From: Oopsacas minuta | Lineage: Eukaryota; Animalia; Porifera | NCBI GenBank assembly: GCA_024704765.1 | Contig: JAKMXF010000309.1 | Coordinates: 287,887-351,886, forward strand | Length of the DNA stretch: 64,000 bases | Direction: 5' to 3' | Part shown: one piece after another, positions 1,317-52,470 of the stretch | Layout: each line of letters begins with the position of its first letter | Position numbering within the stretch: position 1 is the first letter of the stretch | Made by a program: the position numbers and the translations under genes | The notes under the pieces: generated by a model | The model's input: only the letters and a program-made list of their open reading frames with translations | Told to the model about the DNA's origin: nothing | Databases searched by the model: none

Positions 1317-2151
1317 TTAATACGAAGGATCTTCATACAAATAATCGTTAGTATCATCCAATGGTATAAGTATAGTGCGTTGTATCTCCGTTGTAGTTAA
1401 AGCAGAATCAGAATTACCATCAACTTCCTTTTTATTGAAATACTGCCATTTCCTATTACAACGACATTCAACACCACATTTACATGAATCACATTTCATG
1501 CATGGGAAATGGCAGCCAGGGCATTCTTGTGACATACAATCGCATAGATCTTGTTTGGAAGCACTTAGTTGTCCTTCATTATTGTACACAGCTAAAATAG
1601 TACATGTATAGATAGAATATGAGATTGTTAATATTACAGTAGACACTGGTGAACCGGAAACAGGACTATACAAAGTGTTAAATTACTCTAGTTAATAGGG
1701 ACAACACCTTTATTCTGCTTAATTGGGTCAAAATGGTACTGGTCACGATGTGACCCTATTAAGCAGAGTCTACTGTATACGCAAAATGTGTGAAAATGAT
1801 AAGTTATATGATAAAATCATATAGATATGTATTTGGAACTATTTTTCTAGCAAAGTTTTGAAATATATGTAAAAGGTGGGAAAATTTGGTTAATCATATG
1901 ATAAATCAAAATTCTATAGAAATCAATATAAACTAACCTAAAAACTGGTCGGTTGGCTGGTCATTGACTGGGACACCAAGGATTTTGCCTCTAGATCTTG
2001 GAGGTATTGTTTGGTAGAAAGCTTGGAAATGAGGACCTGGATTTTGAAACTCTAAACTTTTCAATTCATTTTTCAAAGCAGTCATTTGTCGTGGATTTTG
2101 CTCTTTGTTTTTAGTTTTGCCATCTTTCAGTTTCTTTTTGCCTTTTCCCAT
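1317..2151 (-). CDS. ARL14EP: ARL14 effector protein-like (ARF7EP_C cysteine-rich domain); 2 exons 2151-1938 and 1591-1317, 162 aa
   Basis: Exon 2 has YNNEGQL..DLCDC..ECPGCHFPCMKCDSCKCGVECRCNRKWQY, the ARF7EP_C pattern. Exon 1 has LKSLEFQNPG. GT-AG phase-1 join is in frame. Confidence 0.8.
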
Positions 2152-2218
2152 TTATTAAGAGCTATACTGTCGATACATAGTTAATACAAATTTTGAATAG
2201 GAAGATGTGCTTTAAGGA

Positions 2219-2540
2219 AAATGGTCCCTTCGGTATAGGCTTATTAGATATTTAACCATGGATGGCGGATTTTGTGTATTTGCTTGGATGTTGTTCTAGG
2301 TCAGCGATCACAACCCGTGGTCCACATACGATAGCAGGGGGCCCAAAGGATCTCAAAATTTGTATTGTGGACTATGGGAGGGGTCCACAGAATGTGTTAA
2401 AATTGGTATAAGGGGTCCACACGGGTGAAAAAAGGTTGGAGAATCGGAAACAATATTCTTGATTTGCATAACATCAAATAAATAAAATCCACCATCCATG
2501 GTTAAACATCTGATAATCATATAGAGGGACATTCGCCCCA
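2219..2540. mobile_element. Long-TIR element (aaaatggtccc...tttaaccatggatgg.ggattt) with a nested family B MITE; related copies at ~54276-54533 and ~54948-55115
   Basis: Inverted pair tttaaccatggatggcggattt / aaatccaccatccatggttaaa recurs in two TRAF introns. Ends approximate. Confidence 0.65.
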
Positions 2541-2624
2541 AAAGTATGCAAATATATGTTGTTTCTATATTTGGTATATAAACAATGAAGTAGTATGCAA
2601 AAATGTTTGATCAGTATTTTATCA

Positions 2625-4746
2625 TTACCAGGAGCTGAAATCACCAAATCCAGTTTTAGCCTTTTTCTTCAATTCTTCTCCAGGAATAATTGAATCTCCT
2701 TTCCTTTTAATTTTCATATTATCTGTTATGCAAACTTCATTTTTATGAGTTACATCTAAATACTTTCCTACTTTATTCGTTGATGATTGCGAAATATTAT
2801 CATCTGATTTAGGTGGTAAGAGTCGCTTGTCTATGTAAGGTTTGATTGCTTGCTCCTTCTGTTCTGATAATTTCGCATCCTCAAACGCAATTTTATCATC
2901 AACTTCTTGGAAAGGATCGACAAACACCATCGTTGTGAGTATTTTAACCTCAGAAATGGGGAGATCGTGTTTATCAGTTTTAATTTTCTCGATTTTATCT
3001 AGAATATCAAATCCACCAACTACCTTGCCAAATACTGTATGTTTGTTGTTAAGATGCATGCATAAACGGTATGTAATGAAAAACTGTGATCGATTGGTGT
3101 CTGGTCCCGAATTTGCCATACTCAAAATACCGCGGTCAGAATGAAGCAAATTCGGCTTGAACTCGTCCTTAAAATCTTCCCCCCAGAAAGATTGGCCGCC
3201 AGAACCATCGCCTTTTGGGTCACCCCCTTGTAGAACGAAATTCCGTATTGAGCGATGGAAAATCGTTTCATCATAATAGCCTTTTTTGCAAAGTTTCAAG
3301 AAATTTTCGCAGGTTTTAGACACAAATTCGCAGTGTAATTCGAGGTTAATATTCCCGAAATTTGTGACTAATCTCACATAGCCTTTCTTCTTCACCATAC
3401 TATAGCGGACGAGATCTTTGCCTAGCTTGGCAGGTTTGATATGAGTTTCGCGAGGTGTTGCGGTTGATGTGAATGAAATAGAAGCTTGCCCTGTTGAATA
3501 ATGTGCTGTATTTCGCTCTGTTAATGGTTCTTCTATCACCTTTGAAGTGTCAATTTTCGCGGAATCGATCTTCGATTTCTTTTCTTCCTTATAGAGCTCT
3601 TCTAAAGCCGATTTACACTCAAATGTCAAATGTCTTATATTTCTCATTGGATTCTTATCTTCTTCATTTTTCCATGAAAGATCGTGTTTTATGTAAAAGA
3701 AATTTGTAATATTGAATTTATTTAAATTCTTTGGATCCTGAAGTGTGATTATGTCAGATTTCGCGAATGGTTCGTCTGAGAGTAATTCGCGAAAATTTTT
3801 CGGTTTTATGTTGAGTTCTTGTAAAGCTTCGTTTGAATAGACATTGCCTAAAAATAATAAAATTTCAGAAGTTTCGACATAATTTTCTCTCAATTTGGAT
3901 TATTAAGATGCTAATACAGAAGACCCCGGTTATAAGAACACCCTTGCGAGTAGTTCCATATGTTCTTGTAACCGGTATAAATATACAGGAATATATGAGA
4001 ACTGTTTTTCCAGAGGATGGTGCTTATATCCGGTGTTCTCATAACAGGCATCTGTTGTGTTGTACGAAATAATCTATTTTGACCAAGAAAGTGTATAATT
4101 GTATGTGAATAAATCGTGTTAGAGATTAGAAAGTGTCAAAATCAAATTCTATGTCACCTTTCACCCCTAATTATTCGGTGGAAGGTAATTTCTGGACAAT
4201 TTTGGAAATTGACCAAAAGATGTGAAAATATGATTAATCATGCGATAAGTGTATCTACACTCAATAGTGTCTACTGACCAATACGAATACAGTAACCTCC
4301 ACAATCGGGGCCTGTGGAAACAGGAAACGGATAATTCCTAGTCCAATACAGTGCTAAAATCTAGGAATAATTTTACCTGTGGTTTTGATGAGAATAACAT
4401 GAGAATGTTCCGTAAATTCCTTATACGTCATAGGACAATGTATTTTACTATCAGCGTTTTTATGAAAGTTAACTTTTATCAAAGATTTGGCATTGAGAAG
4501 TTTTCCAGTTATTGGACAGTGTTTGAATTTCTTCAAAAACGGTAGAATTTGTGGTAAATCATATAATATACCATCTTCAGTACAATAAGGATGTTCGGCA
4601 GGTTGTAGTGACAAACCGCAGTAATTATACGGTAGGCGACGGTATTCGGTAGATTCGGTACTTGATGCTTTCTTGCCTCCGTATATAGTACTCCACTCTT
4701 TTGTTGTGAGGTACATCTTGTCCTTTTGATGTTGTTTCTTACCCAT
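2625..4746 (-). CDS. PPIL2: U-box cyclophilin (Cyp60/PPIL2); 2 exons 4746-4377 and 3847-2625, 530 aa
   Basis: N-terminus MGKKQHQKDKMYLT, U-box region (LSLQP..HPYC..G.LYD), cyclophilin domain (FHRSIRNFVLQGGDPKGDGSGG, SMANSGPDTNRSQFFIT), C-terminal FGDFSSW. Phase-1 intron. Confidence 0.95.
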
Positions 4747-4949
4747 AATTGTGCTAGGTTATATATAGTGGGAATTGAAATTTAATGATTCTGCTTAAGA
4801 AAGGTCAGATCGGGACTAGGACATAAAGATTGAAAAAGCACCAAATTTTGAATAACTAATGTCAGTAATCACATCAATAGACTAAATTAAATTACCCAAA
4901 CTAATAACTACGAAAGTTCTCTATCAAATCCATTCTATATTACATCTAA

Positions 4950-5615
4950 CTACATTTCCGGTGCTCCAGGAACAGATGGTGTTTTCCCGCTCTTAGATTC
5001 ATACCATGCCTTTGTAATTGTACGCTTCATGTCTTCATCACCTTCATCGTACATTTTCTGCATCATTTTCATAATGCCAGCACTCGGGTCGTCTGAATCT
5101 TTCTTGGAAATGTCGTCAAGTTTCTCTTTCTCTTTTTTCGCTTCTTTCGTCTTGCGTTCCACCATGGTTACTTCTTCCCAGTTACCAGGTGAGGCTTTTG
5201 GCATGCTGATAATAACTGATCCTCTCTTCAAGATTGCCTTTGCGGAATCTGCCTTGATCTTACCGGATAATTCGCCGATAGAAAAATTGTAATTTCTGTT
5301 ATTCAAATCGTTGACCTTTACATTAACAGAATTTGCAGTGAACTCAGTTACGATTTGACTATCAATAGCACCCTCCAAACCAGGGATATCAGAAACGTAG
5401 ATCTTGACAGTTGAATCGGTTTGGTCCCAACCATATGTTTTGACTTGAATGGTAGGCTTTATTTGTACGGCGGGGGTAGCATGTTGAGGTTTAATTGTCT
5501 TAGAAATCGAGGATTTATTGCGGTTGATAGCATCTTGTAATAGAGAGATAGTCATAGGGTGTTTGGCTTGTGGAATTAGTGATTCCAATTCCTGTACGAA
5601 CGCTTCTATATCCAT
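4950..5615 (-). CDS. CACYBP: Calcyclin-binding protein / Siah-interacting protein, intronless
   Basis: YGWDQTDSTVKIYV (CS domain) and DPSAGIMKMMQKMYDEGDEDMKRTITKAW (SGS domain). True ATG is at 5615; the ORF track starts at a TTG. Confidence 0.9.
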   Translation of the reverse strand: MDIEAFVQELESLIPQAKHPMTISLLQDAINRNKSSISKTIKPQHATPAVQIKPTIQVKTYGWDQTDSTVKIYVSDIPGLEGAIDSQIVTEFTANSVNVKVNDLNNRNYNFSIGELSGKIKADSAKAILKRGSVIISMPKASPGNWEEVTMVERKTKEAKKEKEKLDDISKKDSDDPSAGIMKMMQKMYDEGDEDMKRTITKAWYESKSGKTPSVPGAPEM

Positions 5616-5684
5616 TTCTAATGCTAAGAAATAAGTCAATTTTTCGAAAAATCCACACGAAATTTTCGCCCTCGTATTTATATA

Positions 5685-5913
5685 CAGTCAGCTCCCGTTA
5701 TATCGAAAGTTAAGGAACCGCGATAATTACTTGGATAAAAGCAGAGTTCGATATAACCGGTGAAGTCAATGTTACTTTTACGATTTGGGACCATATTGTA
5801 CAAATTCAGACTGGGCCCCCATATCAATTCAACACATTCTGTGGACCACCTCCCATAGAATGCAATACAAACTTTGGGATCATGTGGACAACCATGGCCT
5901 TGGTTGGAACCGC
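5685..5913. mobile_element. Truncated MITE A joined to a MITE B fragment
   Basis: Left TIR of family A at 5685. Family B internal motifs and right end (ggttggaaccgct) at about 5810-5913. Confidence 0.6.
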
Positions 5914-6371
5914 TAGCTATATTCTCGCCTTCTTACAATATACAACAAGATAGCCAAGGCAATATTTAGATACCGGTTAACAGGTGAAATGTAGGACTTC
6001 TGGACAGAGGCAGTAAAGACCCCGAAAAACCTTATTTTTGTCTTGTTCTATAAAAAAATGAAATCTGGTAAAGTATATTTGGATAACTGAATATATGAAA
6101 TAGACCGATTGTATTTAAGATAAATTGTTCATCCCAAACTTGTAATAAATGTATCAACAAAACACAATAATCACAACCAAGAAATATATATAAATATTTC
6201 AACACCTTCAAAAATACGTACATTTCTAAACAAAACTTTCACTATCTAGTACACAAGCAATAAATCCCAAAATATATACAACAAACAATTCAAAATAGTG
6301 TGTAAAGAAACAATACAAAATGTACAGTGTATTTTTGCATAGAAATATGTATGCAATAGAATTCAATGTGT

Positions 6372-8949
6372 TTACAATTGTGTATCAAATTCTTCGACAT
6401 TTTGGTAGACAGGAATTGTCCCTTGTTGTGGGATTGGGTCAATTTTGAATGGGATTGGCGGTGCTGGACCGTATGTCGGTTCTTCTGACGTCATTGCCTC
6501 AGGTTTAGTCGGGTGTGTACGTTGGTTTATATACTGTTTCACTGCCATATATACAAAACGATATTGTCCCTCGGTTTGCACCATCCCTGAACGCTGAGCA
6601 CGTAGCATTTGTATACTTTTTTGTATATCGATTTCAACATCAAAACCTTGTTTATCAATCAAATGCAATAAAATATCGATTATTATAAAGGTACCTGTAC
6701 GTCCTATACCCGCACTGCAATGGACGACGATTGGACCAGGTGAATTTCCCTCTGACCTGAAATGCTCTTGACGTTTATTAACTTCGCTTAAGAAGCTCAA
6801 AACATTCCCTGCATCATTGGGTATACCATGATCAGGCCAGCTAACGAAATGAAAATAGTAGATGATACGTTCTTCTGGGTCACCCTCTTTGGTCGCACGT
6901 AATTCCCGCACAACGTGAGATATGTATTTCTTCTCGTGTGTACACGTCACCATGATGTTCTTGAATGTTCTTGTCGTATCCTTTTCTGTCCAGTAGCGAG
7001 CGCATTTATTTTTCCCTCTCTCAATTTCGTTACATGTCATTACGATTACACGTGTGTTATCTTGCCAGAGCATACGCCAGAAGTCAATCACTGTGTGTGG
7101 TAGGCAACCTGAATAGATTAAGGTAACATGCTATCCCAATTGAAATTGAATATAGTAGAGAATTTACACCGAAGTTACAAATGTTCAAAAGTTAAGATTT
7201 CTACTACAATAATCTCGAAAATTATATTTTGAAAAGTTACAAACCTTGTGTAGCAATATAAGCCTTCTCACTACCCTCAACTTCTCCACTGATATAATTA
7301 GCGTTTATATAATCACTCTCTCCATCTCCATCTTCATCTGCTAGAATTACACGAGTATGATCGAATGGGAGAATATTCTTATATCTGTATAGGAAATAAA
7401 TATATACTGAGTTAAAAGTGAAATTTTTGAAATTCAATAATATCATATAGGAAATGGAAGAATTGCTCCCTATGGGCTATTTATAGCGGTTCCCAACCTG
7501 TTTTACCCACGGCCTCGCTATACTATCTTTAACACATTATGTGGACCCTCTGCTTTCTCCCGTAGACCACCGACCAAGGAGTACATGAACCTCAGGTTGG
7601 GAAAAGTTGCTCAATTTCGCGATTCAGAGGAAGTACTGAGGGTTAAAAGAGTGAATTTGAGTGAAACTATCAACATTTAAAATGTTTGTAAATACAATAA
7701 AACGTATAATCTCACCTATTCTTAACTCTACAGTCAGGCCTATTACCTTCCTTCCTATTGAATAAATGCTTACATTCCATCTGTTGTAATTGTTCAAATT
7801 CCTCCCAAAATCCTGCTTTACTTCCTCCAATCTCTTTCCCCAATTCTTCTACCCGAGGAGTTATGTCGGTTGGTATTATTCGTGTAGCATTGAATGGTTG
7901 TTTCAAATGAAGTACAGCTCCTAAAGGCAATACTTATGTTACTATGGTAACTATACATGGTTAATGGAATGTCAGAACTATGAATGAAACAATTCTGGAC
8001 GAGGCATATTGTCTAAATCTGTGCCTAAACCTGTCTTATGTACTTATGACATCACTTGGTGTATAATTCAATAAATAGTCACAATACCTGTAATCTCGAC
8101 TAATGGTATCTTCTTATAGTGTTCTATCAACTCATTCAATCCATTAAACTGTTGTCCACCTCCTACGTCACATTTCCCATCCTTACATCTTATCATTACA
8201 TGTGATACTCTATTGTCTATTAGTGCTGATAGCACATAATCACCTGGTTGACTGAGGGAGGCTCTCACAAGGTAACTACCGTTCTGTCCACGGTCTAGAA
8301 GTAGCTTGTCTGCCTCTTTGCCTAGAAAAGCATGTATGCATGTATGTTAGATACAGTGTTCATGCCGAAAGTTGATTCAAAAGTTCAAGAGTTCATACCA
8401 TACGTCAAAAGTTCATGTTATTCCCAATTAATAGTCTGAAATTTCCATTTATGGATATATTTGTCCAAAATCTCGGGATTTATCGGGGCTCTGAATTTAG
8501 GTAACTGAAATTTGTAGGCCCAAAGATTCCCTCAGTTTCAGACTACTAACTTTCTATTGTGACCAAATTTCCGCGATTAGTTTCTTCATATACATACCTG
8601 AAATAGATCCATGAAACCATCTCTCTCTCGTCTCCTCTCTACAACTCAATGGATGTCTCAGTTCAATAATTTCACCATTCTTCTCCCGTAATTGCCCTGT
8701 ATTCTCCATATAATATTGTACTAACTCAGCTAGTGTAGCGAACTTCTCTCCACCAAATAAATCGTAATAATCTCCCTGATTTTGTATACGAATATGTGTA
8801 ACTTCTGAGCCACGCCTGACGGATAAGGTGAAGTCCCCCATTTGGCTTCCACTAGGGCGGGCGATAAAGGAACCATCTCGTCCATGGTCGAGCAATAAAC
8901 TCTCTGCCTCTGGCCCTAGAAGTGTAGGATGAAACCAACGTCTGTTCAT
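6372..8949 (-). CDS. PTPN11: SH2-SH2-PTP tyrosine phosphatase (SHP2/corkscrew); 5 exons 8949-8598, 8321-8088, 7920-7716, 7384-7245, 7108-6372, 555 aa
   Basis: RRWFHP N-SH2, ERWFHG C-SH2, [27 protein letters not shown] and [11 protein letters not shown]. All exon phases are consistent. Confidence 0.95.
7485..7608. mobile_element. MITE family B in a PTPN11 intron
   Basis: gcggttcccaacct ... aggttgggaaaagttg. Confidence 0.7.
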
Positions 8950-9004
8950 GCTAAGTGAAAACAGAATTTGGAATTATTATATTATGCTATCCAGCTACTG
9001 CATA

Positions 9005-9154
9005 CAGTCACCTCAAGTTATATCGAACACGGATATATTGAAATCTGAAATGCACAAATATGGTCCCAAACCGTCAAAGTAACGTATATAACATCAGTTA
9101 TATCAAAGGAATTATCATGGCCCCCTGGAGCTTCGATATAACGGGAGGTAATTG
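9005..9154. mobile_element. MITE family A
   Basis: TA|cagtcacctcaagttatatcgaa ... ttcgatataacgggaggtaattg|TA. Confidence 0.85.
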
Positions 9155-9980
9155 TATTTTAACAATGCATTGACATATTTTGATAACATAGTTCCTCAAG
9201 AGGGTAAAGGAGCATTCTATTTCTTCCATACGCAGTTTCCGCCCCCAAAACAAAGAGATTCAAAGAGAAATTTTATGAATTTTTACTATGGAAAGTTTGG
9301 ACAAATTACCTTCTTCTGAGATTTGAAATTCTGACCAATACAGTGACGGCAAATTATATTTCAAGTCAGTGTGTATGAGAATGTACTTTCCAGTGCCAAT
9401 TATACCCAATTTTTCTCCCCAAAAAGTAGGTGCTTGCAGCGCTCAATAGCTTCTGCAGTATCAAAACCCATTACAACTTGTAAAAGAACCGGCAGGCATA
9501 TTGATTGAATAAATTTGAAACAATATAGAGGGTTTATATAAGAATTCAGTAGTTGAATAGATTACATTATTTATTGCAAGAGTGATATCATTAGGTTACT
9601 CGTAAAATAATATCATAATTTGTAATTAACCACCATTAAGTAAGTATTCTGAGAAGTGAAATAATACTGTGATGGTGAGGAATTACTTATGTACAGGAAA
9701 TGTAATAATATATGACAATTCATATTATCCACTTCCTCTTTCAGAATTTTACTACAATGATCTAAGAAGTGAGTAATCTATTGAATTTCAGTTTCTTAGA
9801 AAACCATGATGTGAGTTTACTCAAAAAATGTTATCACTACGTACTATAGCTCAAACGCGAACACTACAAGAAATAATAATCATAAGAAATACGAACGATA
9901 CAGCAATAATAATACAATCAGAAAGTGATAAAAATAATTAAACCAAGTGATGAGAGTGTGTATTATATCGACCTTATAGA

Positions 9981-10583
9981 TTATTTCGGGAAGCCCATAT
10001 ACGGCTGAGGTACACCCTGACAAACATCATAAGAAGGGGGATCAGTCTCCATGAGGTAATTGGGGTAGCAGATCGGATCTGGTTGTCCAGGGTAAGGCAC
10101 CGGTGACGCGTACGAGTATCCTAGCGTGTGGACCGGCTGGGACTGGGGGTAACCATATGATTGGCTGTCAGGGTTAATCATGGCCGGTATGTTCGTCGGC
10201 GTGTTTGGAATATTGATGGGTACATTCTGCCTCATGTCGCGTGTATTTTTAGCTTCCACACACATAAATACACATAATATGCAACCAATTACAATACAAG
10301 GCAAGCAAGATATGAGATAGCAAGCTGACATTGTTGCTATGTAGATAACTGGTGAGACGGTGACGACGTCAGGTACATTTGTACAGTTATCGTTATAGGT
10401 GTAGTAATAGTTAGCGTAATAGGTAAAGTAGTTGTAAAAGTAGGTATTGTAAGTGTGGTAGGAGTAACTACGTTCTAGTCTAGTCGGTGCGCCGTGATTC
10501 TTGACTTCTTCTCCAACACTTTTCTGATATTTTAAGGTTAATACGAAGATTATGAATGAGAGGGAAATCAACTTTAAATCCAT
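9981..10583 (-). CDS. Tyr-rich single-pass membrane protein, paralog A (CYYR1/Shisa-like topology)
   Basis: Signal peptide, RLER|S, Tyr-rich tract, Cys-rich TM (CYLISCLPC), Pro/Tyr/Gln tail with PPSY. First ATG is at 10583. Confidence 0.8.
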   Translation of the reverse strand: MDLKLISLSFIIFVLTLKYQKSVGEEVKNHGAPTRLERSYSYHTYNTYFYNYFTYYANYYYTYNDNCTNVPDVVTVSPVIYIATMSACYLISCLPCIVIGCILCVFMCVEAKNTRDMRQNVPINIPNTPTNIPAMINPDSQSYGYPQSQPVHTLGYSYASPVPYPGQPDPICYPNYLMETDPPSYDVCQGVPQPYMGFPK

Positions 10584-10848
10584 CTTCACATATAGAGCGG
10601 GATTCTACTATTTAAACTGAATGCAAACCTTCAAAAATAGCAAATTTAAGCGTCTCGCGTATGCAAACAAAATGAGAAAAGATAGAGAAATATAAATAGT
10701 AATAAATTCGAACAAAAAGTATAAGAAAAAAGTTAGATAGTGTTTAAGCATAAAGTGGTATAAAAAAGTTAGAAAGAGATATATGGAAATAAGTTTGTTA
10801 TAGAATCGTGTTAGGTTTGGAAGGCTGTATAGGTTTGTTACCCAGCAT

Positions 10849-11331
10849 CTACAAGTGGGGCTTCTCAATACTAGGATCTACAAGTGGGTAGTATCCATGA
10901 GTTTGCACTGGTTGCGGCTGTTGTGGGTAACCTTGGGGTTGTGGGGTATAACCTTGAGGTCGTGGGTAGCCATAAGGCTGAGGTGGAGGAGCAGCAGTTG
11001 CAGTAGCTACAGGCATTGAAGTAATTATATGACTAGGTGCATTACTTTTACTACGATTACTATTCACAGCAACGACGATAACACCAATAATCCCTGCTAT
11101 AATACAGGGGAAGCAAGTACAGCAAAAACAAGCTATACTGCAAACTATATACACCCATGCTCTAGCAAGGCTGTAGTTATAGTTATAGGAGTAGTAGTAG
11201 TAGTAGTAGTAAGTAGTGTCATAATAGTTGTAGTAACTGGCACGTGCTGATCTGTCAAGGTTTTCCTCCGTACTCACCTCACAGAGGATGGTCATGAGAA
11301 GTACGAGTAGTGTGATGAACTTCAGGTACAT
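10849..11331 (-). CDS. Tyr-rich single-pass membrane protein, paralog B
   Basis: MYLKFITLLV signal peptide, RSAR|A, YYNYYDTTYYYYYYYSYNYNY, Cys-rich TM (ACFCCTCFPC), PQGY repeats. Confidence 0.8.
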   Translation of the reverse strand: MYLKFITLLVLLMTILCEVSTEENLDRSARASYYNYYDTTYYYYYYYSYNYNYSLARAWVYIVCSIACFCCTCFPCIIAGIIGVIVVAVNSNRSKSNAPSHIITSMPVATATAAPPPQPYGYPRPQGYTPQPQGYPQQPQPVQTHGYYPLVDPSIEKPHL

Positions 11332-12700: not shown

Positions 12701-12987
12701 GGTAAACTAGATATGGAATTTCAAGGTGTTACAATATTCAAATGTATCTCTTACTCATAAACATATTTTGTTCACAAAGATTGTGGTAATAATAATGTTG
12801 TATTCGAATTCATATACGAGAGATATTATAAAATTTAGTTTGAAATATCGCGAAAATGTTAGTGAAATGTGGTTACAAACATCACATAAACAAACATACA
12901 CTACATCAAAAGAAGTGATAAAATATCAATCAAAGTATTTGGGGACAGTAAAAATAAAGTGAAAATAAGAATAGTTGGGTATAACTC

Positions 12988-40600: not shown

Positions 40601-41630
40601 TGCTTCCCAACAGTCGTCTTAGTACTATCCATAACTTCCATAGAATTACTTCTGCGTAGTCCACCACCAGGTTTATCAATAGTAAAATCTATAGACGTTA
40701 AATCTCCTAAACATGAGAGATTTAAATTAGGAAATACACTATTATTCTGATAGGATTCTGAAAATGAATGTGGACGTTGATGCCGAGGTAATAGCGGTGC
40801 TGTATAATCCTGTTTAGAGCGGACAATACTGTCATCTGAGCTTAGAAAATCTGCGTTTTGTAACACGTCAAAACTGAGATCTTTCGCGATCTCTTGTGTG
40901 TAGATACGTGAGTCGAGTTGGTCCTTTGTGAGGTGTTCTTTTTCGCAGAATATCATAATTGGACAATAGTTATTAGCCAGGAAATATTGACATGTGTTTG
41001 CTTTTAAAAGTTGAATAAGTAAAGTCAATTCTTTTTCGCGTTTTCGAATGAGTTCTTCGTTATCAATTGGGGAGTTTAAAATCGCGGTTTTCGACACTTT
41101 GGTTGTACTAAATGGATCGAAATCTCTATCAGGGTTTCCAGTAGATAAACCAACGCTCAATTTAGGGAAAGCACCCCTGAGAAGTTCGATGAGATCCTGC
41201 CGGTCATAAAGTGATCCAAAACTACAAATTAAATATTCAGTTACGAATGTTAACAGAGGGTAACTACCGTCTTCTATTTGTAACGACACTAAGGATGTTA
41301 GATGGAAACCTAAAATAACAAACAAATAATTCATAATTTGTTGAATTAAGAGTTGGCAAGTATGAATCTATCAAGATTCAACTAACCCATATCATATATA
41401 TTTGACTTAGAAATAAAGTATACCATCTCAGTAGTAATATACAGCATACCAGGACATGACGTCATTGAATCGCACTTAATACAACTGCATGCTCTTAGTA
41501 TCAGTTCATCTGCCTGATAACCTTGTCTGTATAAGTTCTCTAAGGTAGTTTGGTCAAGTTTGGAGGATGGTTTGTAAGGTTCTGAGGTTGATACGTGTGT
41601 ACATGTGGATGTAGTACTGCTAAAAGCCAT
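37688..41630 (-). CDS. GRAM - CCCH zinc finger - UFD1-like - PPC-like - TRAF-type zinc finger protein; 4 exons 41630-41387, 41309-40584, 40293-38872, 38451-37688, 1051 aa
   Basis: All three phase-1 GT-AG joins are in frame (3156 nt total). GRAM-like CSC..PGMLYIT..VYF, C-x7-C-x5-C-x3-H finger, UFD1 motifs (DKIILSPS, VGVLEF, RLQP), GDPDLYVS and six C2HC/C2H2-type knuckles. Confidence 0.75.
38703..38842. mobile_element. MITE family C in intron 3 of the GRAM-UFD1 gene
   Basis: Shared internal motifs (attcctagtccc, tttttcggcgtc) and right TIR. Start approximate. Confidence 0.7.
40482..40555. mobile_element. MITE family B, short copy
   Basis: caccggttcccagcct ... aggttgggaaccgctg. Confidence 0.8.
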
Positions 41631-41670
41631 AGCTAGTATGTATTCTTTGAAATAATACAAAGTTAATGTG

Positions 41671-41868
41671 AATTCCTTAATGGTCACCATGGAAACATAA
41701 GATCGTTTATTAGAAAGTATTCTTTCACAGGGAATTAAATGCTAAAGTAAATTCCTTAATGGTAACCATGGAAACATAAGATCGTTTATTAGAAAGTATT
41801 CTTTCACAGGGAATTAAATGCTAAAGTAAATTCTTTGAATGGTAACCATGGAAACATAAGATCGTTTT
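41671..41868. repeat. 79-bp tandem repeat (~2.5 copies), each unit carrying an RFX X-box-like motif
   Basis: Units start at 41671, 41750 and 41829. GT(C/A)ACCATGGAAAC occurs at 41683, 41762 and 41842. Confidence 0.9.
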
Positions 41869-42036
41869 AGTTACTAAATAAGCCATAGTAATGTATTATT
41901 TCAAAACGAATTTATGTTTTCGTATATTCCTGAATTGTAACCATGGATACATGACAGCTGTCAGAACCAAAGAAAACCTTCTGGCAAGTTCGAGTGAGGA
42001 AATTTCGTACGTCAAAACACATATTTTTTGTTACAA

Positions 42037-42996
42037 CTAATCAAATGGTAAACAATTTGCAGAAACTTTAAGTAGATGACTTGATTTATTAAATTTAGCC
42101 GCTACACTAGTCTCATCAACTTGTTGTTCAAGCTTAACAGACAATTCATAGTGTTCACTACGTAGATACAATTCATCTGCCGAAATATGTAAATCCAATT
42201 CACTTACTGTGTTAATTTTCGGTAGAGTTATACATAATTTTAACAAGTTGATGTTTTCGTGTTTTATAATGTTAGATGAGTATAGTGGTATTTCTTTCGC
42301 GATATTTTCAACCGGAAGTTCTTCAATTAAAGTTTTTTCGGTTGATTTGGTATTCTCTGAGTTGTTAAGATTTATTTTCATGAGATTATCAATCATTTCT
42401 TTATTAGAAATATCGTCTTGCTCCTTTGTTGTATATTTCTCTGGTATAGATTTCCTATATATAATCTCGTATAGCCAATTTGAACTAATGGCTGGATCAC
42501 CCTTACAAGCTGATTTTAACCGCGAAAATTCCAATTCTATATTCAATTTCCGCACGTCCTTGACATATGTTAAAACCAACTCAAAAAGTTGTTGTAAATC
42601 GGTTTTATCCTTACAACATTCTGAGTATACTTTTGGATTAACCGCAACTGTAATAACGAAATGATCGGTTCCTCCTGTTGATAATATTTTCAAATCCGAG
42701 CAAGTCATTGGTATAGGCGAAGTGTCAGTTTTCGGTTCTCCTATTTGTTTCCATGTAAAAATATTCACATATAAGAATTTGGATATTGATTTATTCGGTG
42801 CTGTGTGAAATTCAGTGCGAATGCATGCTTCGCTTTTCGGCTTTGTGAATAGTTCAGCTCCCTGCTCCATATTTTGTTGTATAAAATTTTTGTAAGCATT
42901 TGGATCTTGTTCAGCTAAATCATCTAACATTTCCCAAATTTGTGAGGCTTGTTTAGGGAAAAGCGATGGATCCATTGAGTCAAATTTGTGCGCCAT
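42037..42996 (-). CDS. PIH1D2: PIH1 domain-containing protein 2, intronless
   Basis: QIWEMLDDLAEQDPNAYKNFIQQ, LYVNIFTWKQI and C-terminal CS domain (LPKINTVSELDLHIS, AAKFNK). Confidence 0.85.
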   Translation of the reverse strand: MAHKFDSMDPSLFPKQASQIWEMLDDLAEQDPNAYKNFIQQNMEQGAELFTKPKSEACIRTEFHTAPNKSISKFLYVNIFTWKQIGEPKTDTSPIPMTCSDLKILSTGGTDHFVITVAVNPKVYSECCKDKTDLQQLFELVLTYVKDVRKLNIELEFSRLKSACKGDPAISSNWLYEIIYRKSIPEKYTTKEQDDISNKEMIDNLMKINLNNSENTKSTEKTLIEELPVENIAKEIPLYSSNIIKHENINLLKLCITLPKINTVSELDLHISADELYLRSEHYELSVKLEQQVDETSVAAKFNKSSHLLKVSANCLPFD

Positions 42997-43142
42997 AGAA
43001 GTGAGAGATTTCGCGATGTAAAAGTGTGATAGGCTAACGAGTAAGGGAATTGTAATTTCCACGTATTAACCGAATTTGTATCAACTAAATCTACTGAACT
43101 AATTTTTAAACCAATCTCAAAATTCGTAAATTTAAATCGTAT

Positions 43143-44622
43143 TTATTCAATCATTTCTACAATAGGCAGATTAGCTGAGCGATCATAACTTATTAATAAT
43201 CTACAATCGAGTGATTTAAGTGTATTTTGACAGGAAATAAACCCATTTTTACCTCTCAGTTTCTGGAAAGGGTTTAGTTTATTAGGTTCTATTACTTCTT
43301 TAAACTCACGGCCTGAGAATCCAATTAATTTTTCCAGAACTTGATCTGAAAATCTAATATCCAATTTCGTGTTTTCTCTGTCTATAAGTTTTGCTTTTAA
43401 CTGCCAGGCTAGTGCTGGGGTGGTGTCAAGTTTCGAGATAAGTGTGAATACCTTACAGTGTGTATATGCTAGACAATTCTGTGATTGACTTATGGCGTGT
43501 GAAATTTCGCGAAGAGTGAGAGTTGGAGGAGAGGATGGTTCGAGTTCAACTTTCGGCTAAAAAAAGAAAAATTGCATACTTACCAAGCCCTGTCAAATAT
43601 TTTCCGGGACATACCGGTATCCCCGGTTGGTAGTATGGAATTGTATATTTGGCTTGGAAAATCGCATTTTAAGTTGTTTTCAAATTAATTGAAAATAAAG
43701 TTACCTCAAAATCCTCATCCATAATATCAGATAATGATATGTCATCTCCAATCAGCTGTTCATCAACAGCTTGATCTATTGCTTCATCTAACCAAGCTTC
43801 ATTAGCTATACTCATCTCATTAATACTGGGATTTTCTACTATTTTATCATCTGATATTATTATTGGACCTGTTGATAATGTTGTCGTTGTTGTTGTTGTT
43901 AGTGGTGGTGGTACAGTAGGTGTTGCTGAAGGTAATGGTGCTGTTGATGAGTTAGGGCCAGGGAGGTCTAGTTGTATGTCAAGTTCCCTTGATAGAAGTG
44001 GAAGTATAGAGTTATCTTCAATCAATTTCTCAACACTGCCTCCTAAAAAATTCGAGATTTGAAAGGGGTACCAAGTATGAAATAGGAATAAATACTTACC
44101 TAAAACATTCACATTACTTCCCTCAAGCAAGACAAACCCATTTCTAACAGGAATCATACCCTTGATAACAATTTTCGCCCCTGGCAACACATTGGGTGTC
44201 AAGGAATGTATAGGTTTGTACTCAATACCATATATGGTAGTGTTACCATCAGTTAACTCGAGTAAGTACATTCGCTTCGTAGGGACATCGGAAATCTTGT
44301 CTGTCTCAAGCTCAGATATAGAAACTTTGTCTCCTAACTTCAAATATTGTTGATATTTTGATGTTGATATATCGAGTAGTTTTGTCAACTGTAAAGTGTA
44401 GCTCATATGAAATACTCTAGTTATAGCGCGTATATCGTGTGGGAGAAATGGCTGGGAAGATTCTGTTATGTGTGTTATAAGCCATTTTTCGTATAGTCGG
44501 ATTGATTGTGGTTTGGAGCTTATTTCACGAAGAGATGGGAGTATTTTCGCGAGCCAGTCGTTACGTAAACAAAGGTTTGTTTGTTGTCTAAATGAATTTG
44601 ATAGTTCTTGCAATTCAGCCAT
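43143..44622 (-). CDS. RMI1: RecQ-mediated genome instability protein 1; 3 exons 44622-44100, 44042-43705, 43556-43143, 424 aa
   Basis: KRMYLLELTDG..YGIEYKPI..L..PGAKI OB fold, and C-terminal OB (WQLKAKL..DIRFSDQVLEKLIGFS). Joins are in frame. Confidence 0.88.
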
Positions 44623-44894
44623 CAAATTAAGATGAAATCACTCAATTACGTCACCAAATCATTAAGTGTATGGCTAAGAAATAAAAGAATTCATAAGGTA
44701 GCTTAGCAACGATTTGGTTGATTGGAATGCATTCTTTTACACCCTCATAATAAATTCAAAACACAATATACTATTGTAATTTATTGAAAACTGATCTAAC
44801 GTATTTGTGAATGGGGTATACTTGTACATATAATAAACTCTCATTTACATTCCAAAACCCTATATTGTAACTAAGCAGTTCGGAGTGATTATAA

Positions 44895-46673
44895 CTACAC
44901 AATTTGTCTATAGAAGAGGAGATAAGCTGTACGTTTTGCTTGATGTTTTAGGACGAAGTCTTCAGTTATAGGATGTATTTCCCGATCGTCAGTGAGTATC
45001 CATTGGTGAGAAGAATCGCAGAATATAGCGCTTGTATAGTGGCCGCCAGTCGCGGACTCACCGTGATGGTAGACGACTGCGATTAGCTTGTAGGTAACAG
45101 GACCTTTATCGCGAAATTCGTGTGATAATAACGATAGAGGGAGTGTGAGTTTCGCGGGATAATCAATCTGTTTTGACACCTTATAACAAGTATCCGCTAC
45201 AAAATTAAATCTTTTCATATGCAGAATCAAAACAGCTGGTAACTTGGATAAATTTTGTTTTCTATGTACTGTTGTTTCGTTAGAATTCGCATCGATGAAT
45301 CCGGCAACTTCTTCCGGTTTTAATAAACCGGATATAGCTTGTTGTATTGTCGTGACGTCAACTTGTTGCATGTCAAGTTGTAGAGAGAAGAAAGGTTGGT
45401 GAGTGACTGAATCTTTGGACTTTGATAAGTGAATTGATGAACGAATTTCGCCGCAGAATATCTGCGAAATTGGAGAGTTATTTATGAAATTTCGTCGTGT
45501 CGATGCGGTTTTGTTCCGCTTCCCAACTTCGAGCCATTCGTCATCGGTTATCGCAGTTTCAATTTCATATATCTGAGATTGGATATTAGCATCCTTTTTG
45601 TATATTTCAATTACGAATGACATTTCTTCATGGAGCTTCTGTAAAATAAATCCAAGAAATTCTTCTGAATCTTCTTGCCTACGTAGAGACAAATTTTGCG
45701 GCTGTAGCTTTTTAATCATATTATATATGTATATGGGTTCAATAGGGGTGGGAATTGGTTTAATTTGTGGGGCTTTACGAGTTTTCCCTGAGGTGACAAA
45801 AACCGGTATTTTAATTGTAGCATAATCGTGTAGAAATAGAATTAAACTGTCGAAAACTGGTGTAGCTGATGGTTTGGTTGAAAGTGACGGAAATGGTTCG
45901 AATGATTGTATCAAGGTAGAAAATTCACTACAGGAACAGAGGGCTTGTAAAGCCGCATGAACATAGCATAAATTCCCGCGGTTTATCAAGCCACGCGGTT
46001 GTGGTGACTCCTTCGCAACCAAATTGGTCGTTAGGAATGTGTAAAGACGTTGCCCTTTATCTATAGCATCTATTCGATCTATTGAATTTGTTTGTGTATC
46101 ACCGTTTGAGTTTTGTTTACCTTTTTTAGGTGTTATTGTTGTTTGATTGTCGAACAGACTGCTCCATATCTTCGTGCATTTATTATCGGTCTTTGGTTCT
46201 TGAATTTTCGGTGACGTAATACCATTTTTGGAAGTGTGTGAACTTCTGCTTTTTGTGTTCTCATTTGGTATGTGTGAATTTTCGCGAATAATTTCAATAT
46301 TATTCACGGCTTTTTCTTGTCTACCAAGTGTCATTGTTTGAGATTGATGGATCAACGGTTGTCGCGAGGTGGAAATAATCGGTAAAGGCAATATTTCATG
46401 TGAATAATCAGATTGACAAATTGGAGTTTTATTTGAAATTTGAACCACTGTGTTACCGAAATTATCTGCGGTGTTTTTCGCGGATTCTTGTGAAGATTTT
46501 CTCATATGAATGAATAATGGATTGTTGAAGTATATATAAGAACAGTTGCCTTTCTCAATGCGAAATTTAACACTTGGAGTTTGTGATATAAGCTTTAATG
46601 ATTCATCAGGACGGAAATTTCCGAATTGGCAAAATTCCAATAAATTGGCTGCATGGCCATTTTGATCTGTCAT
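44895..46673 (-). CDS. USP10: Ubiquitin carboxyl-terminal hydrolase 10, intronless
   Basis: PRGLINRGNLCY Cys box, RQEDSEEFL, QPFFSLQLDM, His box VVYHHG....GGHYT and an N-terminal FGNF motif (FGDF-like). Confidence 0.88.
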   Translation of the reverse strand: MTDQNGHAANLLEFCQFGNFRPDESLKLISQTPSVKFRIEKGNCSYIYFNNPLFIHMRKSSQESAKNTADNFGNTVVQISNKTPICQSDYSHEILPLPIISTSRQPLIHQSQTMTLGRQEKAVNNIEIIRENSHIPNENTKSRSSHTSKNGITSPKIQEPKTDNKCTKIWSSLFDNQTTITPKKGKQNSNGDTQTNSIDRIDAIDKGQRLYTFLTTNLVAKESPQPRGLINRGNLCYVHAALQALCSCSEFSTLIQSFEPFPSLSTKPSATPVFDSLILFLHDYATIKIPVFVTSGKTRKAPQIKPIPTPIEPIYIYNMIKKLQPQNLSLRRQEDSEEFLGFILQKLHEEMSFVIEIYKKDANIQSQIYEIETAITDDEWLEVGKRNKTASTRRNFINNSPISQIFCGEIRSSIHLSKSKDSVTHQPFFSLQLDMQQVDVTTIQQAISGLLKPEEVAGFIDANSNETTVHRKQNLSKLPAVLILHMKRFNFVADTCYKVSKQIDYPAKLTLPLSLLSHEFRDKGPVTYKLIAVVYHHGESATGGHYTSAIFCDSSHQWILTDDREIHPITEDFVLKHQAKRTAYLLFYRQIV

Positions 46674-46918
46674 TGCTAGTGTAAAAGTTTAAAGAGATAG
46701 TTAGGACACCATGGATTTAGGGAATTTCATAACATATACACAAAAAAATTCGAAAAAACACAGAAAATAAGCCAATATAAGTATTTGAAAAATACACTCA
46801 AGAAATGTATACAAAAATAATGCAAAAATAAATCAACGCAATTATACAAATATGAGCCAAATTTAAAATATAAATTAATGAAATAATCTTATCTACAAAA
46901 ACTACACTAATTCTCTCT

Positions 46919-48500
46919 CTATGGAGAGGTGGGAGAAGCTACCTCAAAGCTCTCACAAGAACCATCATGGAATAGATCGGAATTAAAACATATATAATGA
47001 CTATTAATAGGGAGCTTAACACTGGAGAACTTAGGAGGGAGACAGTCAACTTGAGCTTGACCTAAGAACATTATCTGAGACACGGCGTTCTCTGTTTGGA
47101 GTTTTTTCTCATACTTTACGAGTAAATTATGGCTACTAAGAGCTAGTTCATTCTGATCTACAGTACGGTCTACTACCTCGTAGTCAAGAGGGATAAACTC
47201 ACTTGTAGTTGAGCTGATAACTCGAATGTCTGTTACTACTATCTGATCTGATTCAGGAATTTCATGAAGAGATCTAAGGGAGAATGGAATGAAGATGTCT
47301 GTTATAACAAGCATCCTCTGGAAAACTGTTCTAATTTCTGAGCCAAAAATTGAAAATTCACAGATTCCCATAAACCCATAATTCAAATCTTTACACAGTG
47401 GATGCTGGTTATAAGAACACCCTTGGGAGAATCAATACATGTTCTTATAACCGGAATAAAATACAATGACAGGAATTACGGACTCTACACGCCAAATTAC
47501 CCCTGACAACATATTGAAACATAATCTCTAGCATGCTTATGAATTTACATAGAAAGGTGTGCAAATCTCCAACCCAGAATGTATATGCGTAACAATTTTC
47601 ATGTTCATTGGACTGCTAGATTTCGCACTGCCGCGGGGACGGATGTACGGATGTCGCACATCGTCAATGCCATTAGGGCATCTCCCTAAAGGAGCTGAAC
47701 TAAAATATATCTTAACGTCATAAACCCTACCTTTTAGAAGTTCCCTCTTTTATACTCAATGCATCCATGGTCTGTCGAGTGTAACACAAATATCTTTTAG
47801 GCTTAGCCGAAAATATCCTTAGTTTTAAGTTTTCCCATAAATCAACCTCTTTCCCACCAGCTGTTGAATCCAGTGCGGTATAACCGACCGGAATTGTCGA
47901 CTTATTTGATACTATTTTAATATCTGTAATGGGGCGAACTTGAGATGTGCTTTGAAGTTTGACATGTCTTATGAGACTTTTTCGACGTTCTGTGTCCAAA
48001 AATTGTAAAGGAATTTTTTTGATATTTTCGCTGATATTGTGTATGTAAGAATCGAGTGATTCCATAGCTTGTGTATTTTCAAATGTTGCCTCATCAGTTG
48101 ATGTTATGAGTTGTATCATATCAATTTTCGCCAGAATGCTATCCAAATGTTCACATTGCAAACTAATATGAGGGCAGTTGTCGGGAATAATTAATTCCGA
48201 CATTCGTGCTTCTATATTATGCACCATGTCCTCACTTATTTCCATTATATGATTCAATTTTTCTTTGTTCGCAATATTGTTAAGACGTTCTTTGAACCGT
48301 TTTAGTTCTGATAATCTTTGTAAACGATTGTCGTTATTTTGTTTATATTCATAGCGAATTCTATCAAAAATACCAAGGATACTTTTCCGCTTGTCTTCTA
48401 TTGAGGTGAATAGTTTCTCAAATAGTTCGATGATTTCGTTTTCTTTTGAGCTGAAATATAATTCCGTATCGATAGTTCCCTCAATCAGCTGTTCGGCCAT
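46919..48500 (-). CDS. MABP-domain (MVB12-like) protein with N-terminal coiled coil; 2 exons 48500-47731 and 47273-46919, 374 aa
   Basis: PITDIKIVS....PVGY..LD.TAGG.EVDLW....RYLCY and VVTDIRVI..IPLDYEVVDRTVD beta-prism repeats. Phase-2 join is in frame. Confidence 0.75.
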
Positions 48501-48623
48501 TATACAATGTTACTGCTAATCGCGAAATTTGACAAATCGTGAGGTTAGATTGACAAATAAAGTGTTTAGACATCCATGGTACAGTAATATTAAATGCAAG
48601 ACTATGGACGAAATACTGCATTT

Positions 48624-48741
48624 CACCGGTTCCCAACCTCTCCTCCGTAGACTCCTTAATACAAATTTGGAGATCTTATAGATTCCATTCTCTTGTCCGT
48701 GGACCACCAAGGGGGGAATGGACCCAGGTTGGGAACAGCTG
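48624..48741. mobile_element. MITE family B
   Basis: caccggttcccaacct ... aggttgggaacagctg. Confidence 0.8.
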
Positions 48742-48882
48742 TTATATTTCTGCAATGAAATATGCAACAATTGAATAAATTCTTTCTGTGAACCATGGAT
48801 AATAACAACCACAAATGCCATAACATATTATAATACAAATAAATAAACACCAATATAGAAAATAAAATTTTCTAACACATAT

Positions 48883-50757
48883 CTAAGATGGGATGTTACC
48901 GGGTATCTCTAGTAATTCACTATCTTTAAACTCATTTATTTCATTGTCAGTAACCTCGGCAAATATGAGATCAATCGAATCTTGATTTTCCTGATTAAAC
49001 ATATTGCCTGTTGGTAAATAACGGACTTTACTTAGACGTTTTAAACAATTTTCACTCTCTGTGAATAGAGATTGTAAGTTTTTAAGAGTTGCTTTAAAAT
49101 CCGTTGTAACTAATCCCAAGTGTTGTCGAACTTGAATTAAATCATGATTCAATAGGAATAACGCATGCTCCAATTTATTAATAGATAAATCGCCTCTGCG
49201 TTTAAAATACAGTGGAATCTCGTGAAATTCGTCGCCAGAAAATGATAACTCGTTATATATCATAGATTGCGAACCGTAGAACAACACAGGGAACCGCAAC
49301 GGCAATCTTAAAATCAACTGTAACAAAGATATGATATGTACTACAAATCCAAGTGACGTATTAATCCCAATATCCGGTATGTAAGTCTGGTTTATAGTAT
49401 TCTGTTTAGGCAATGGAATACCGAGAATAGTTGGTAGGAATATTTCCTGTGGAATCTCGAGCTTACCCGTTATCTGAGGCTCTGGGGGTATTACTATATC
49501 ATATATACTACCAAGGTTTTGTATTAGACTTAATCTTCTACATGTTATTGCATTTAGCTGGGTAACTAGTGTGTATTTACGGGTTGAATGTCTGTCACGT
49601 TTATCTTCTAATGATAATTGACTGCATTTGTGTTCTTCTATGCTCTGTTGTGTTTCTAATTGATGTACTCTGTTCTAAATTGATAAAGACCCTCTTTTTA
49701 TTGAACTATTGTTAAATTACGTATTTACAACACCCGCCATATGGAAGCTCAAGGGACCGTGATAATTACTTGGATATAACCGATAAAATAACATGTTACT
49801 TTGAAGGTTTGGCGCCATATTTGTACAATTTAAGACTTCGATATTAGCGGGGAATTCTATGTTAAGGGAGTTGACTGTATTTTAGTTTATTAACAACTTA
49901 CCTTTTCGATCACTTCAGATAAATAAGTTTTCTTCTTTTCAATAACATTTTGAAACTCCTTTTTCCTGTTCTTTAACTGATTAATACTATACCTCAAGTT
50001 CTCTAATTCTTGTGTATGTTCGTAGTGTAATTGTAACAGAACTTTGATTCCAGCACAGAAATTAGCCTTTCTTCTCTCTTCTGTGTAGGCTGCTCCTATC
50101 AATGGAGCTAGTGTGTGTAATGTAGGTAGGGAGTATGTCTTACCGAATGTTGTTGAAGAGGTGAAATCGTGAGAATAGGGAAGTTCTATGGGAAAAGAAT
50201 TATAATATACACAGAACCATGGATACATGGAATAATAGTATATGGATACTTGGTTAGAAAGAAATTTGACGTCACTTTATAATTTTCATAAATGTACAAG
50301 TACCTATTTCATGCGTAAAGACTTTCAATCCCTCTACAAGCGATCTGTCTGTGTATAGAAGATTGCTTTTACTTGCATTTCTAAGCCCGAAAAGCACCAA
50401 ATTCGGTGACGTCAAAACCCCAACTCGATGTTTCTCTATACCAACTAATTCATTCAAATCCACGGTCCATTCTAATAGTAATTTGCTAGAATTCTCTGTC
50501 ATCCAAATACGTAATATAAACCGCGATTCGCTACAGGTTAATTTATCCAGGTAAATCGTGTGAGATAGTTTCTTCCAATTAGGATTACGAGAGTTAGTAT
50601 GTTTTTCACTGCGATATAACAGTGTTGTGGGTGTAGACAGGGAGTGTAGGGTAAAGAAGAGAGATGGTATGTCTGTCGTGGACAAACGACGGAGTGATAT
50701 GTGACGTATGTGACGTATACGATAGCATACGTCAAGTTTAGGCGTATAGCTTGACAT
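48883..50757 (-). CDS. UVRAG: UV radiation resistance-associated gene protein; 3 exons 50757-50304, 50185-49902, 49674-48883, 509 aa
   Basis: C2 domain (RIRHIRHISLRR, LYRSE...NSRNPNW, LLLEW), coiled coil, BARA2-like (SLGFVVH....LPLRFP, LFLLNHDLIQVR). Confidence 0.88.
49723..49877. mobile_element. MITE family A in UVRAG intron 2
   Basis: Right TIR gggagttgactg|TA is intact; the left end is degenerate (start approximate). Confidence 0.7.

Positions 50758-52470
<1,713 letters not shown>

Follow-up and report, generated by a model that had tools for sequence, protein, structure and literature searches.

What does it mean when 20 consecutive genes of an animal genome all lie on one strand? The question is raised by a 64,000-nucleotide (nt) stretch of the genome of the glass sponge Oopsacas minuta, which we refer to as the window (positions 287887 to 351886 of contig JAKMXF010000309.1, hereafter C309, in an assembly of 61,460,524 bases and 365 contigs). 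An interpretation made from its letters alone (the sequence-only reading) had taken the run for an operon-like block, transcribed as a polycistron and resolved by trans-splicing. The genome holds 16,413 genes, which on average contain 1.59 introns each and are separated by 2 kb (PMC10280926). Spliced leader (SL) trans-splicing is documented in hexactinellids (PMC7986045, PMC10282587), and a leader of about 37 nt is present in long cDNA reads of A. vastus (PMC10282587). Operons were unreported for glass sponges according to a methods paper of 2021 (PMC7986045), and a text search showed that neither glass sponge genome paper (PMC10280926, PMC10282587) discusses gene orientation or operons. Our analysis identifies the block as a conserved co-directional gene array, one of several such arrays genome-wide, perhaps a dozen, and makes it unlikely that it is one polycistronic block. 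The best single account, which we hold with a little less than even confidence, is that the genes of this array have compact promoters of their own and that leaky termination between them is tolerated by virtue of trans-splicing.

The gene content and orientation of the run proved to be as first described. Open reading frame (ORF) lists, translations and Pfam scans, the latter performed one exon at a time for multi-exon genes, assign all 20 genes in the interval 1320-50757 to the minus strand, and 16 unrelated families are left once paralogues are collapsed. The plus-strand ORFs within the block are collagen antisense frames or low-complexity sequence, with no Pfam match. The plus-strand side opens with a Rab gene at 51683, beyond which lie TRAF and bZIP genes. 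On an ORF strand map that includes the 200 kb to the left of the window, the one-strand block is 59.1 kb long in all, with its left end 8.8 kb before the window; this span includes 2,683 bases directly left of the window (C309:285204-287886) that read as N.

Co-orientation over such distances turned out to be a property of the whole genome. We collected the coordinates and strands of Pfam matches across the assembly for Pkinase plus PK_Tyr, Ras, Helicase_C, RRM_1, Ank_2 and zf-RING_2 (the last of which yielded just 23 matches) and collapsed same-family neighbours less than 30 kb apart, which removes tandem paralogues and leaves 447 genes. The count was restricted to pairs of genes from different families separated by 5 kb or more; the coordinates were transcribed by hand, with a few errors possible. 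The two members of a pair shared a strand in 39 of 61 cases at 5-20 kb (0.64), 43 of 72 at 20-40 kb (0.60) and 87 of 137 at 40-80 kb (0.635), giving 169/270 (0.626) for 5-80 kb together. The share was 0.49 at 80-160 kb, 0.51 at 160-320 kb and 0.50 beyond 320 kb. In 2000 randomisations of strand the value for 5-80 kb was never attained (permutation p<0.0005), a bootstrap over contigs gave 0.556-0.702, and the count without C309 was 168/267. Orientation runs compatible with chance, which the sequence-only reading had named as evidence that would speak against it, are thus rejected genome-wide. For comparison, a survey of 64 eukaryotes put the proportion of co-directional pairs at about 50% for most species and at 98% for Leishmania (PMC2871058). 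The genome-wide strand polarity is statistically solid, and we found no existing description of it.

The shape of this relationship is informative. A first-order chain, in which each gene follows its neighbour with a probability of 0.65-0.7, would reach 0.5 within 3-4 genes; a share that stays flat to 80 kb instead implies that genes are grouped in polarised domains, which extend up to about 80 kb and have some three quarters of their genes on the favoured strand (polarity about 0.75). This also alters the significance of the run in the window. The chance of 2^-15 originally attached to it presumes a 50:50 coin; given the measured polarity of 0.75-0.8, the probability that 16 unrelated genes line up is about 1-3% per run. 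In a genome of 16,413 genes, some dozen runs at least 20 genes long are to be expected. On another contig, C255, 10 of 11 sampled unrelated genes are on the minus strand over about 470 kb (~48-522 kb; Pfam match coordinates only), a strand bias that exceeds the 80-kb scale seen genome-wide and is similar to that of C309.

We also built a local strand map of 264 kb (the window plus 200 kb to its left) from a codon-usage score on stop-to-stop ORFs. The block in the window is the longest one-strand block of this region, about twice the length of the next longest (26.8 kb). In the 200-kb flank, coding sequence amounts to 29,138 amino acids on the minus strand and 7,640 on the plus strand, and about 17 plus-strand genes or small groups break up the minus-strand genes. 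The plus-strand ORFs of the flank are single or paired, and those tested are mostly real genes (NHL, Ank, B12D, Rdx). The flank therefore looks like the outcome of a biased coin (about 0.8 minus) and not like a series of strict blocks. Given these interruptions and a genome-wide concordance of 0.63 instead of about 1, the near-complete co-directionality of kinetoplastids, with switches at unit boundaries only, is not the pattern found here.

Is the array conserved? Relatives of USP10 with 61-72% identity were found on long ENA contigs, and these contigs also carry orthologues of PIH1D and CDC123. Four related genomes keep the order and strand of TRAF(-) and Rab(-) on one side of the divergent switch and of UVRAG, MVB12, USP10, RMI1, PIH1D and GRAM/UFD1 (CD36) on the other. 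CDC123 follows on the same strand in two relatives, 24-30 kb further downstream; PITP, collagen 2, CDC123 and collagen 1 retain their order and strand in one of these two, and in the most divergent relative only collagen 2 followed by CDC123 was found. Since microsynteny among glass sponges is extensive in general, with 848 synteny blocks and 8106 genes between A. vastus and O. minuta (PMC10282587), this conserved order is no specific evidence for operons. The spacers are less constant than the genes. That between RMI1 and PIH1D is 146 nt here as against 292-647 nt in relatives, that between MVB12 and USP10 is 245 nt as against 306 to about 1250 nt, and that between PIH1D and GRAM is 346 nt as against about 220-580 nt; the USP10-to-RMI1 spacer is the sole one that is short throughout (187-283 nt). 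The spacers tolerate repeat insertions and insertions resembling miniature inverted-repeat transposable elements (MITEs). The MVB12-like gene, single here and in two other relatives, is a tandem duplicate in two (L022 4278-8683; L024 6113-9350).

Non-coding conservation was scanned with 14-mers common to three species and tested against shuffles. The divergent spacer between Rab and UVRAG contains, at about its midpoint, a conserved 18-nt block, TCGTATTGAATATGACGT, at 51185-51202, with a TGACGT core resembling a cyclic AMP response element (three species, p 0.02). A second conserved element, of about 40 nt, directly follows the USP10 stop codon on the minus strand (44841-44881; 14-mers with 2-4 summed mismatches in three species, matched by no shuffle). 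It lies in the 3' untranslated region (3'UTR) and may be a regulatory element; the remainder of the spacer behind USP10 is not conserved in the relatives. The acceptor-like AG before the ATG of USP10 and of PIH1D is likewise kept.

We then considered whether the spacers leave room for promoters. The seven short stop-to-ATG spacers measure 146, 203, 245, 259, 269, 346 and 382 nt, and the lengths quoted in the sequence-only reading are right to within a few bases. Over the window as a whole, tandem spacers range from 146 to about 1500 nt, those measured exactly having a median of 418 nt, and they appear to fall into two classes, ten of 146-473 nt and about nine of 700-1500 nt. The short intercistronic regions of an SL operon are thus present, but for sub-groups of genes only. 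The further argument, that spacers of this size have little space for a promoter, is not supported by comparison with divergent genes. Head-to-head ATG-to-ATG gaps in the 264 kb are 127, 261, 310, 343, 349, 504 and so on up to 2692 nt (median 1029), and in 5 of the 17 pairs the gap is 127-349 nt. Each such gap must hold two promoters, so that one promoter fits in less than 175 nt. The median tail-to-tail gap in the same region is 557 nt, and the shortest such gaps measure 180-330 nt. With two promoters in under 350 nt and two 3' ends in under 330 nt, a tandem spacer of 150-380 nt alone excludes no promoter. In sequence L004, two ORFs of 560 amino acids face apart (4710-6389, minus; 7668-9347, plus) with near-identical upstream sequences, and form an inverted duplicate pair.

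The spacers contain several candidate signals. TATA-like motifs precede some internal genes, for example PITP and CACYBP. An acceptor-like YAG lies 0-3 nt before 45 of 134 ORF starts, and three of the seven short spacers contain AATAAA or ATTAAA at a distance of 18-130 nt from the acceptor or ATG downstream. Neither is present in the 146-nt spacer between RMI1 and PIH1D (42997-43142, minus strand), which has an acceptor-like TTAG whose last base is at 43034. The window was also scanned for Rfam families and tRNAs, which gave no match, hence no SL RNA or other RNA gene in the spacers. Three further motifs were considered and set aside. AATAAA at 30-60 nt before start codons, as an operon-style poly(A) signal, is at least equally common before divergent genes; AATTCCC, considered as a promoter element, occurs 2.4 times more often than expected and shows some enrichment upstream of ORFs, but is too diffuse; and the 4-fold non-coding excess of CCATGG stems from MITE-like terminal inverted repeats and a 79-nt tandem repeat instead of a signal in the spacers. 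The MITE-like elements, about 130-260 nt long with terminal inverted repeats TTAACCATGGATGGYGGA (TTAA ends), occur in spacers and introns; copies lie at 2252-2505 and 54948-55079 of the window, with more in sequences L010, L011, L015, L019 and L021, and one element occupies more than half of the PPIL2-to-ARL14EP spacer.

Four sequencing runs of one study cover the stretch, and their contigs were placed on 41401-47400. Three of them (X1-X3) are DNA-like, with even depth and Nextera adaptor ends. The fourth, X4, we infer to be RNA, on the basis that introns are removed and depth varies by gene; the MVB12 intron has been spliced from one X4 contig but persists in another, of depth 12. Depth in X4 is about 240-640 over PIH1D, 500-1900 over RMI1, 8,000-20,000 over USP10 and 450-740 over MVB12, the contigs of USP10 being 10-40 times deeper than those of its neighbours. 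Contig depth is zero at 46801-46836 (minus strand), within the MVB12-to-USP10 spacer, and the value of 453.8 for the bin 46801-47000 comes from contig 23 alone (553.5 x 164/200). The USP10-to-RMI1 spacer has an average depth of at most about 200 over ~44645-44790.

The situation between RMI1 and PIH1D is different, this being the only spacer with unbroken RNA-like contigs. Contig 21 (43006-43419, depth 435) overlaps contig 20 (42552-43035, depth 481) by 30 nt, that is k-1 for 31-mers, and contig 20 ends exactly at the AG of TTAG. Such a branch is what a leader-joined form together with an unspliced continuation would give. In the contigs of this one RNA-like run, RNA from RMI1 does run into PIH1D. 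No leader sequence was present among the 18 loose ends listed, beyond which there are 85 more. An exact-protein look-up for transcript contigs of the sponge's own genome returned no record, and Logan contigs of relatives that carry PIH1D or USP10 (L027, L028 and L029) were rejected as transcript evidence, being collinear with genomic DNA or having long non-coding flanks. Within the last RMI1 exon (43006-43600), X4 depth falls about four-fold near 43419, from about 1700 to about 435, and downstream of this point equals that of PIH1D; the drop could mark an alternative 3' end or a distinct transcript composed of the RMI1 tail plus PIH1D.

How might a co-directional array of this kind work? In the account that we prefer, most of its genes would be transcribed from very compact promoters of their own, located in the spacers, and a spliced leader would be added at the acceptor directly before the start codon. 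Leaky termination between co-oriented neighbours would allow some RNA to enter the next gene, as from RMI1 into PIH1D, and trans-splicing would ensure that this does no harm, or is even of use. If the RNA instead ran on into a convergent gene, the product would be antisense RNA, and in a tightly packed genome this could favour head-to-tail order. Of the earlier trans-splicing interpretation, this retains what the data support: the co-orientation is real, non-random and conserved in relatives, SL trans-splicing is documented in hexactinellids, and the contigs from RMI1 to PIH1D are continuous. The array is unlikely to be one transcription unit, and its tightest pairs remain candidates for two-gene units.

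Several observations weigh against separate promoters. Tandem spacers have a median of about 420-470 nt, which falls below the average of the two medians for divergent and convergent gaps (about 790 nt). A TATA[AT]A motif at -90 to -30 precedes 18 of 102 tandem starts as against 14 of 31 divergent starts (Fisher p 0.003), although internal exons dilute the tandem starts and there are paralogous promoters among the divergent ones; this gives only a hint that tandem genes may less often carry a TATA promoter. In the three-species scan, four of the five tandem spacers have no conserved block above chance and the divergent head spacer has one, which is the pattern expected of a single promoter at the head. 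Contigs also do not reliably show where transcripts start or end, their depth is a poor measure of expression, and a hole in them proves little. The promoters themselves are inferred.

A second possibility is that the run is a chain of small SL operons of 2-6 genes, each resolved by 3' end formation and trans-splicing. Example units would be UVRAG-MVB12-USP10-RMI1-PIH1D-GRAM/UFD1, CACYBP-PPIL2-ARL14EP and CD36-coiled-coil, each with one promoter, either at the divergent head or within the 700-1500-nt spacers. Such units would accommodate the two classes of spacer (ten of 146-473 nt and nine of about 700-1500 nt), the sole conserved non-coding block with a transcription-factor-like site, which is that of the divergent head spacer, and the scarcity of TATA-like motifs before tandem genes. 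The conserved acceptor-like AG before the ATG of USP10 and PIH1D fits as well, as do the unbroken contigs that lead from the last RMI1 exon into PIH1D, branch at the acceptor AG at similar depths (435 and 481) and cross a spacer that lacks AATAAA. Furthermore, a genome-wide excess of co-orientation in a group with SL trans-splicing is the customary setting of operons. However, spacer lengths within the proposed six-gene unit differ 2-5 fold among species, USP10 is 10-40 times deeper than its upstream gene, and the MVB12-to-USP10 spacer has a stretch of zero contig depth, with a low average between USP10 and RMI1. Two spliced genes are joined by contigs only through a k-mer overlap at one spacer, a second leader type is unreported, and hexactinellid operons have so far gone unreported (PMC7986045). 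We consider small co-transcribed units a live possibility that commands about a third of our confidence, with RMI1-PIH1D as the best candidate.

Larger-scale explanations fare less well. That the whole 50-60 kb is one kinetoplastid-like polycistron, starting at the divergent strand-switch and trans-spliced into mRNAs, would agree with at least 20 co-oriented unrelated genes beginning at a conserved divergent switch and with a strand concordance that is flat to 80 kb genome-wide. We nevertheless regard it as very improbable, since domain polarity is just about 75% with lone opposite-strand genes in neighbouring domains, about nine spacers measure 700-1500 nt, TATA-like motifs precede PITP and CACYBP, the RNA contigs show a hole and large differences in depth, and tissue-type genes (the collagens and CD36), together with membrane-protein genes, adjoin housekeeping genes. 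A broader version, in which strand-polarised domains of 50-80 kb would each start from a divergent switch with a conserved promoter element and would mostly be transcribed as a long multi-gene precursor cut by SL trans-splicing, is improbable. Polarity could instead come from genes being oriented along the direction of replication forks, as they are in bacteria or human replication domains, and have no relation to polycistrons. A biased coin that operates within domains and is gone beyond about 80 kb, a plausible half-replicon size, would suit this idea, as would a block that starts at a divergent switch; but third-codon-position GC and AT skews are alike in plus- and minus-strand genes of a minus-rich domain, with no strand skew independent of transcription (replication component -0.005 for GC and -0.002 for AT, standard errors about 0.01), and the explanation is unlikely to hold. 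Finally, the arrangement might be due to chance or be purely historical, with no mechanistic meaning. Glass sponge genomes rearrange little (848 blocks, 8106 genes; PMC10282587), and an old order would persist. Random orientation is rejected genome-wide, however (p<0.0005), and slow rearrangement keeps an order without creating a strand bias among unrelated genes, which leaves this view improbable.

The sponge array can be compared with several known systems. Kinetoplastid directional clusters also comprise tens of unrelated co-oriented genes running from a divergent switch, with each mRNA likely trans-spliced; however, co-directionality is about 98% in Leishmania (PMC2871058) compared with a strand concordance of about 63% here, and the sponge has interspersed opposite-strand genes, introns and TATA-like motifs before many genes. 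With the SL operons of nematodes (the C. elegans SL2 type), the array shares co-oriented unrelated genes, some spacers of 150-400 nt, an acceptor-like site just before the start codon, conserved gene order and a lineage with SL trans-splicing. It differs in its run of 20 genes as against 2-8, in its many spacers of 700-1500 nt with species-variable lengths, in its inclusion of tissue-type genes, in its hypothetical polycistronic precursor, and in having no known specialised leader for downstream genes. The operons of tunicates (Ciona, Oikopleura) resemble it in that the animal's genome is very compact, that there is apparently a single leader type and that many housekeeping genes are arranged head-to-tail. 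Their intercistronic region is almost nil, unlike the shortest spacer here, which is 146 nt with 109 nt from stop to acceptor. In the compacted genomes of microsporidia and nucleomorphs, short spacers go together with read-through into the next co-oriented gene and overlapping transcripts. These genomes are not known to have SL trans-splicing that could rescue the downstream gene, and in the sponge read-through was seen at only one of four spacers.

The individual genes of the block, all on the minus strand, are described here from its head near the divergent switch to the left end of the window. The first gene is UVRAG/VPS38-like (48883-50757; PF17649, with orthologous exons in relatives). 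The spacer that separates it from Rab (50758-51682) forms the strand-switch, and the head-to-head pair recurs in relatives L023 and L024; the Rab GTPase itself is the first gene of the plus side (51683-52467, plus strand; PF00071 at C309:339638-340239, plus). There follow an MVB12-like gene with two exons (46919-48500; intron ~47276-47735; PF10240 over two ORFs, with a loose contig end at 47275 that reads into the upstream exon), the single-exon USP10 (44895-46673; PF00443), whose acceptor-like TAG/CAATG junction (acceptor before the slash) is kept in relatives, and RMI1 with three exons (43143-44622; PF08585). The introns of RMI1 (43557-43704 and 44042-44098) are both skipped by X4 contigs, with GT..AG on the minus strand. 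PIH1D is a single-exon gene (42037-42996; PIH1 domain, PF18201 and PF08190, with orthologues in relatives). The next region, 37688-41690, encodes GRAM-like, CCCH, UFD1 and TRAF-Sina zinc finger domains, either as one gene or as closely linked exons (Pfam scan), in the same exon order as in relatives. A 79-nt tandem repeat of 2.6 copies with 96% matches (41664-41867) lies over its 5' end and start-codon region; the contig of one DNA run has one 79-nt copy fewer (joint 41685 to 41765), and hence either the copy number is variable or the assembly differs.

Further downstream are a CD36 family scavenger receptor (34685-36211; PF01130, E 2e-109), a coiled-coil protein with no family by translation and Pfam scan (33496-34230) and the phosphatidylinositol transfer protein, PITP (31991-32791; PF02121, E 2e-103). 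Fibrillar collagen 2 (24661-30463, approximate ends; from ORFs, with a match in relatives) is directly preceded upstream by an ORF at 30670-31089 that has a same-strand homologue in a relative. The single-exon CDC123 gene (D123; 22915-23865; PF07065, E 7.6e-72, with orthologues in relatives) lies between this collagen and fibrillar collagen 1 (14544-21500, approximate ends), which has many exons in the form of Gly-X-Y ORFs and whose C-terminal exons match relatives on the same strand. Four tandem paralogues, TM-A, TM-B, TM-x and TM-C, encode Tyr-rich single-pass membrane proteins by translation and belong to no Pfam family (9981-13509). The run continues with an SH2-SH2 tyrosine phosphatase of the SHP type in several exons (6372-8949; PF00102, E 7e-57, and SH2-like ORFs), CACYBP with CS and SGS domains by Pfam scan (4950-5615; 203 nt from PPIL2), PPIL2 with a U-box exon and a cyclophilin exon (2625-4746; PF00160, E 3.8e-52) and, as the leftmost gene of the run inside the window, the two-exon ARL14EP-like gene (1320-2151; PF14949, E 2.7e-20).

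What do these results mean for glass sponges? Strand sharing of 63% over distances of up to 80 kb, compared with about 50% in most eukaryotes, turns single striking runs such as this one into a genome-wide property. If the polarised domains were transcribed as domain-wide precursors, an animal would be expressing its genes in a kinetoplastid-like manner, and the opposite-strand genes scattered among them would be independent units. Among animals, SL trans-splicing has a scattered distribution, through gain or retention in separate groups, and operons are usual where it has been studied in compact genomes. If small operons are not confirmed in the sponge, the polarity needs another explanation. 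If they are, these would be the first operons known from Porifera and relevant to the idea that operons arise repeatedly from the combination of trans-splicing and genome compaction.

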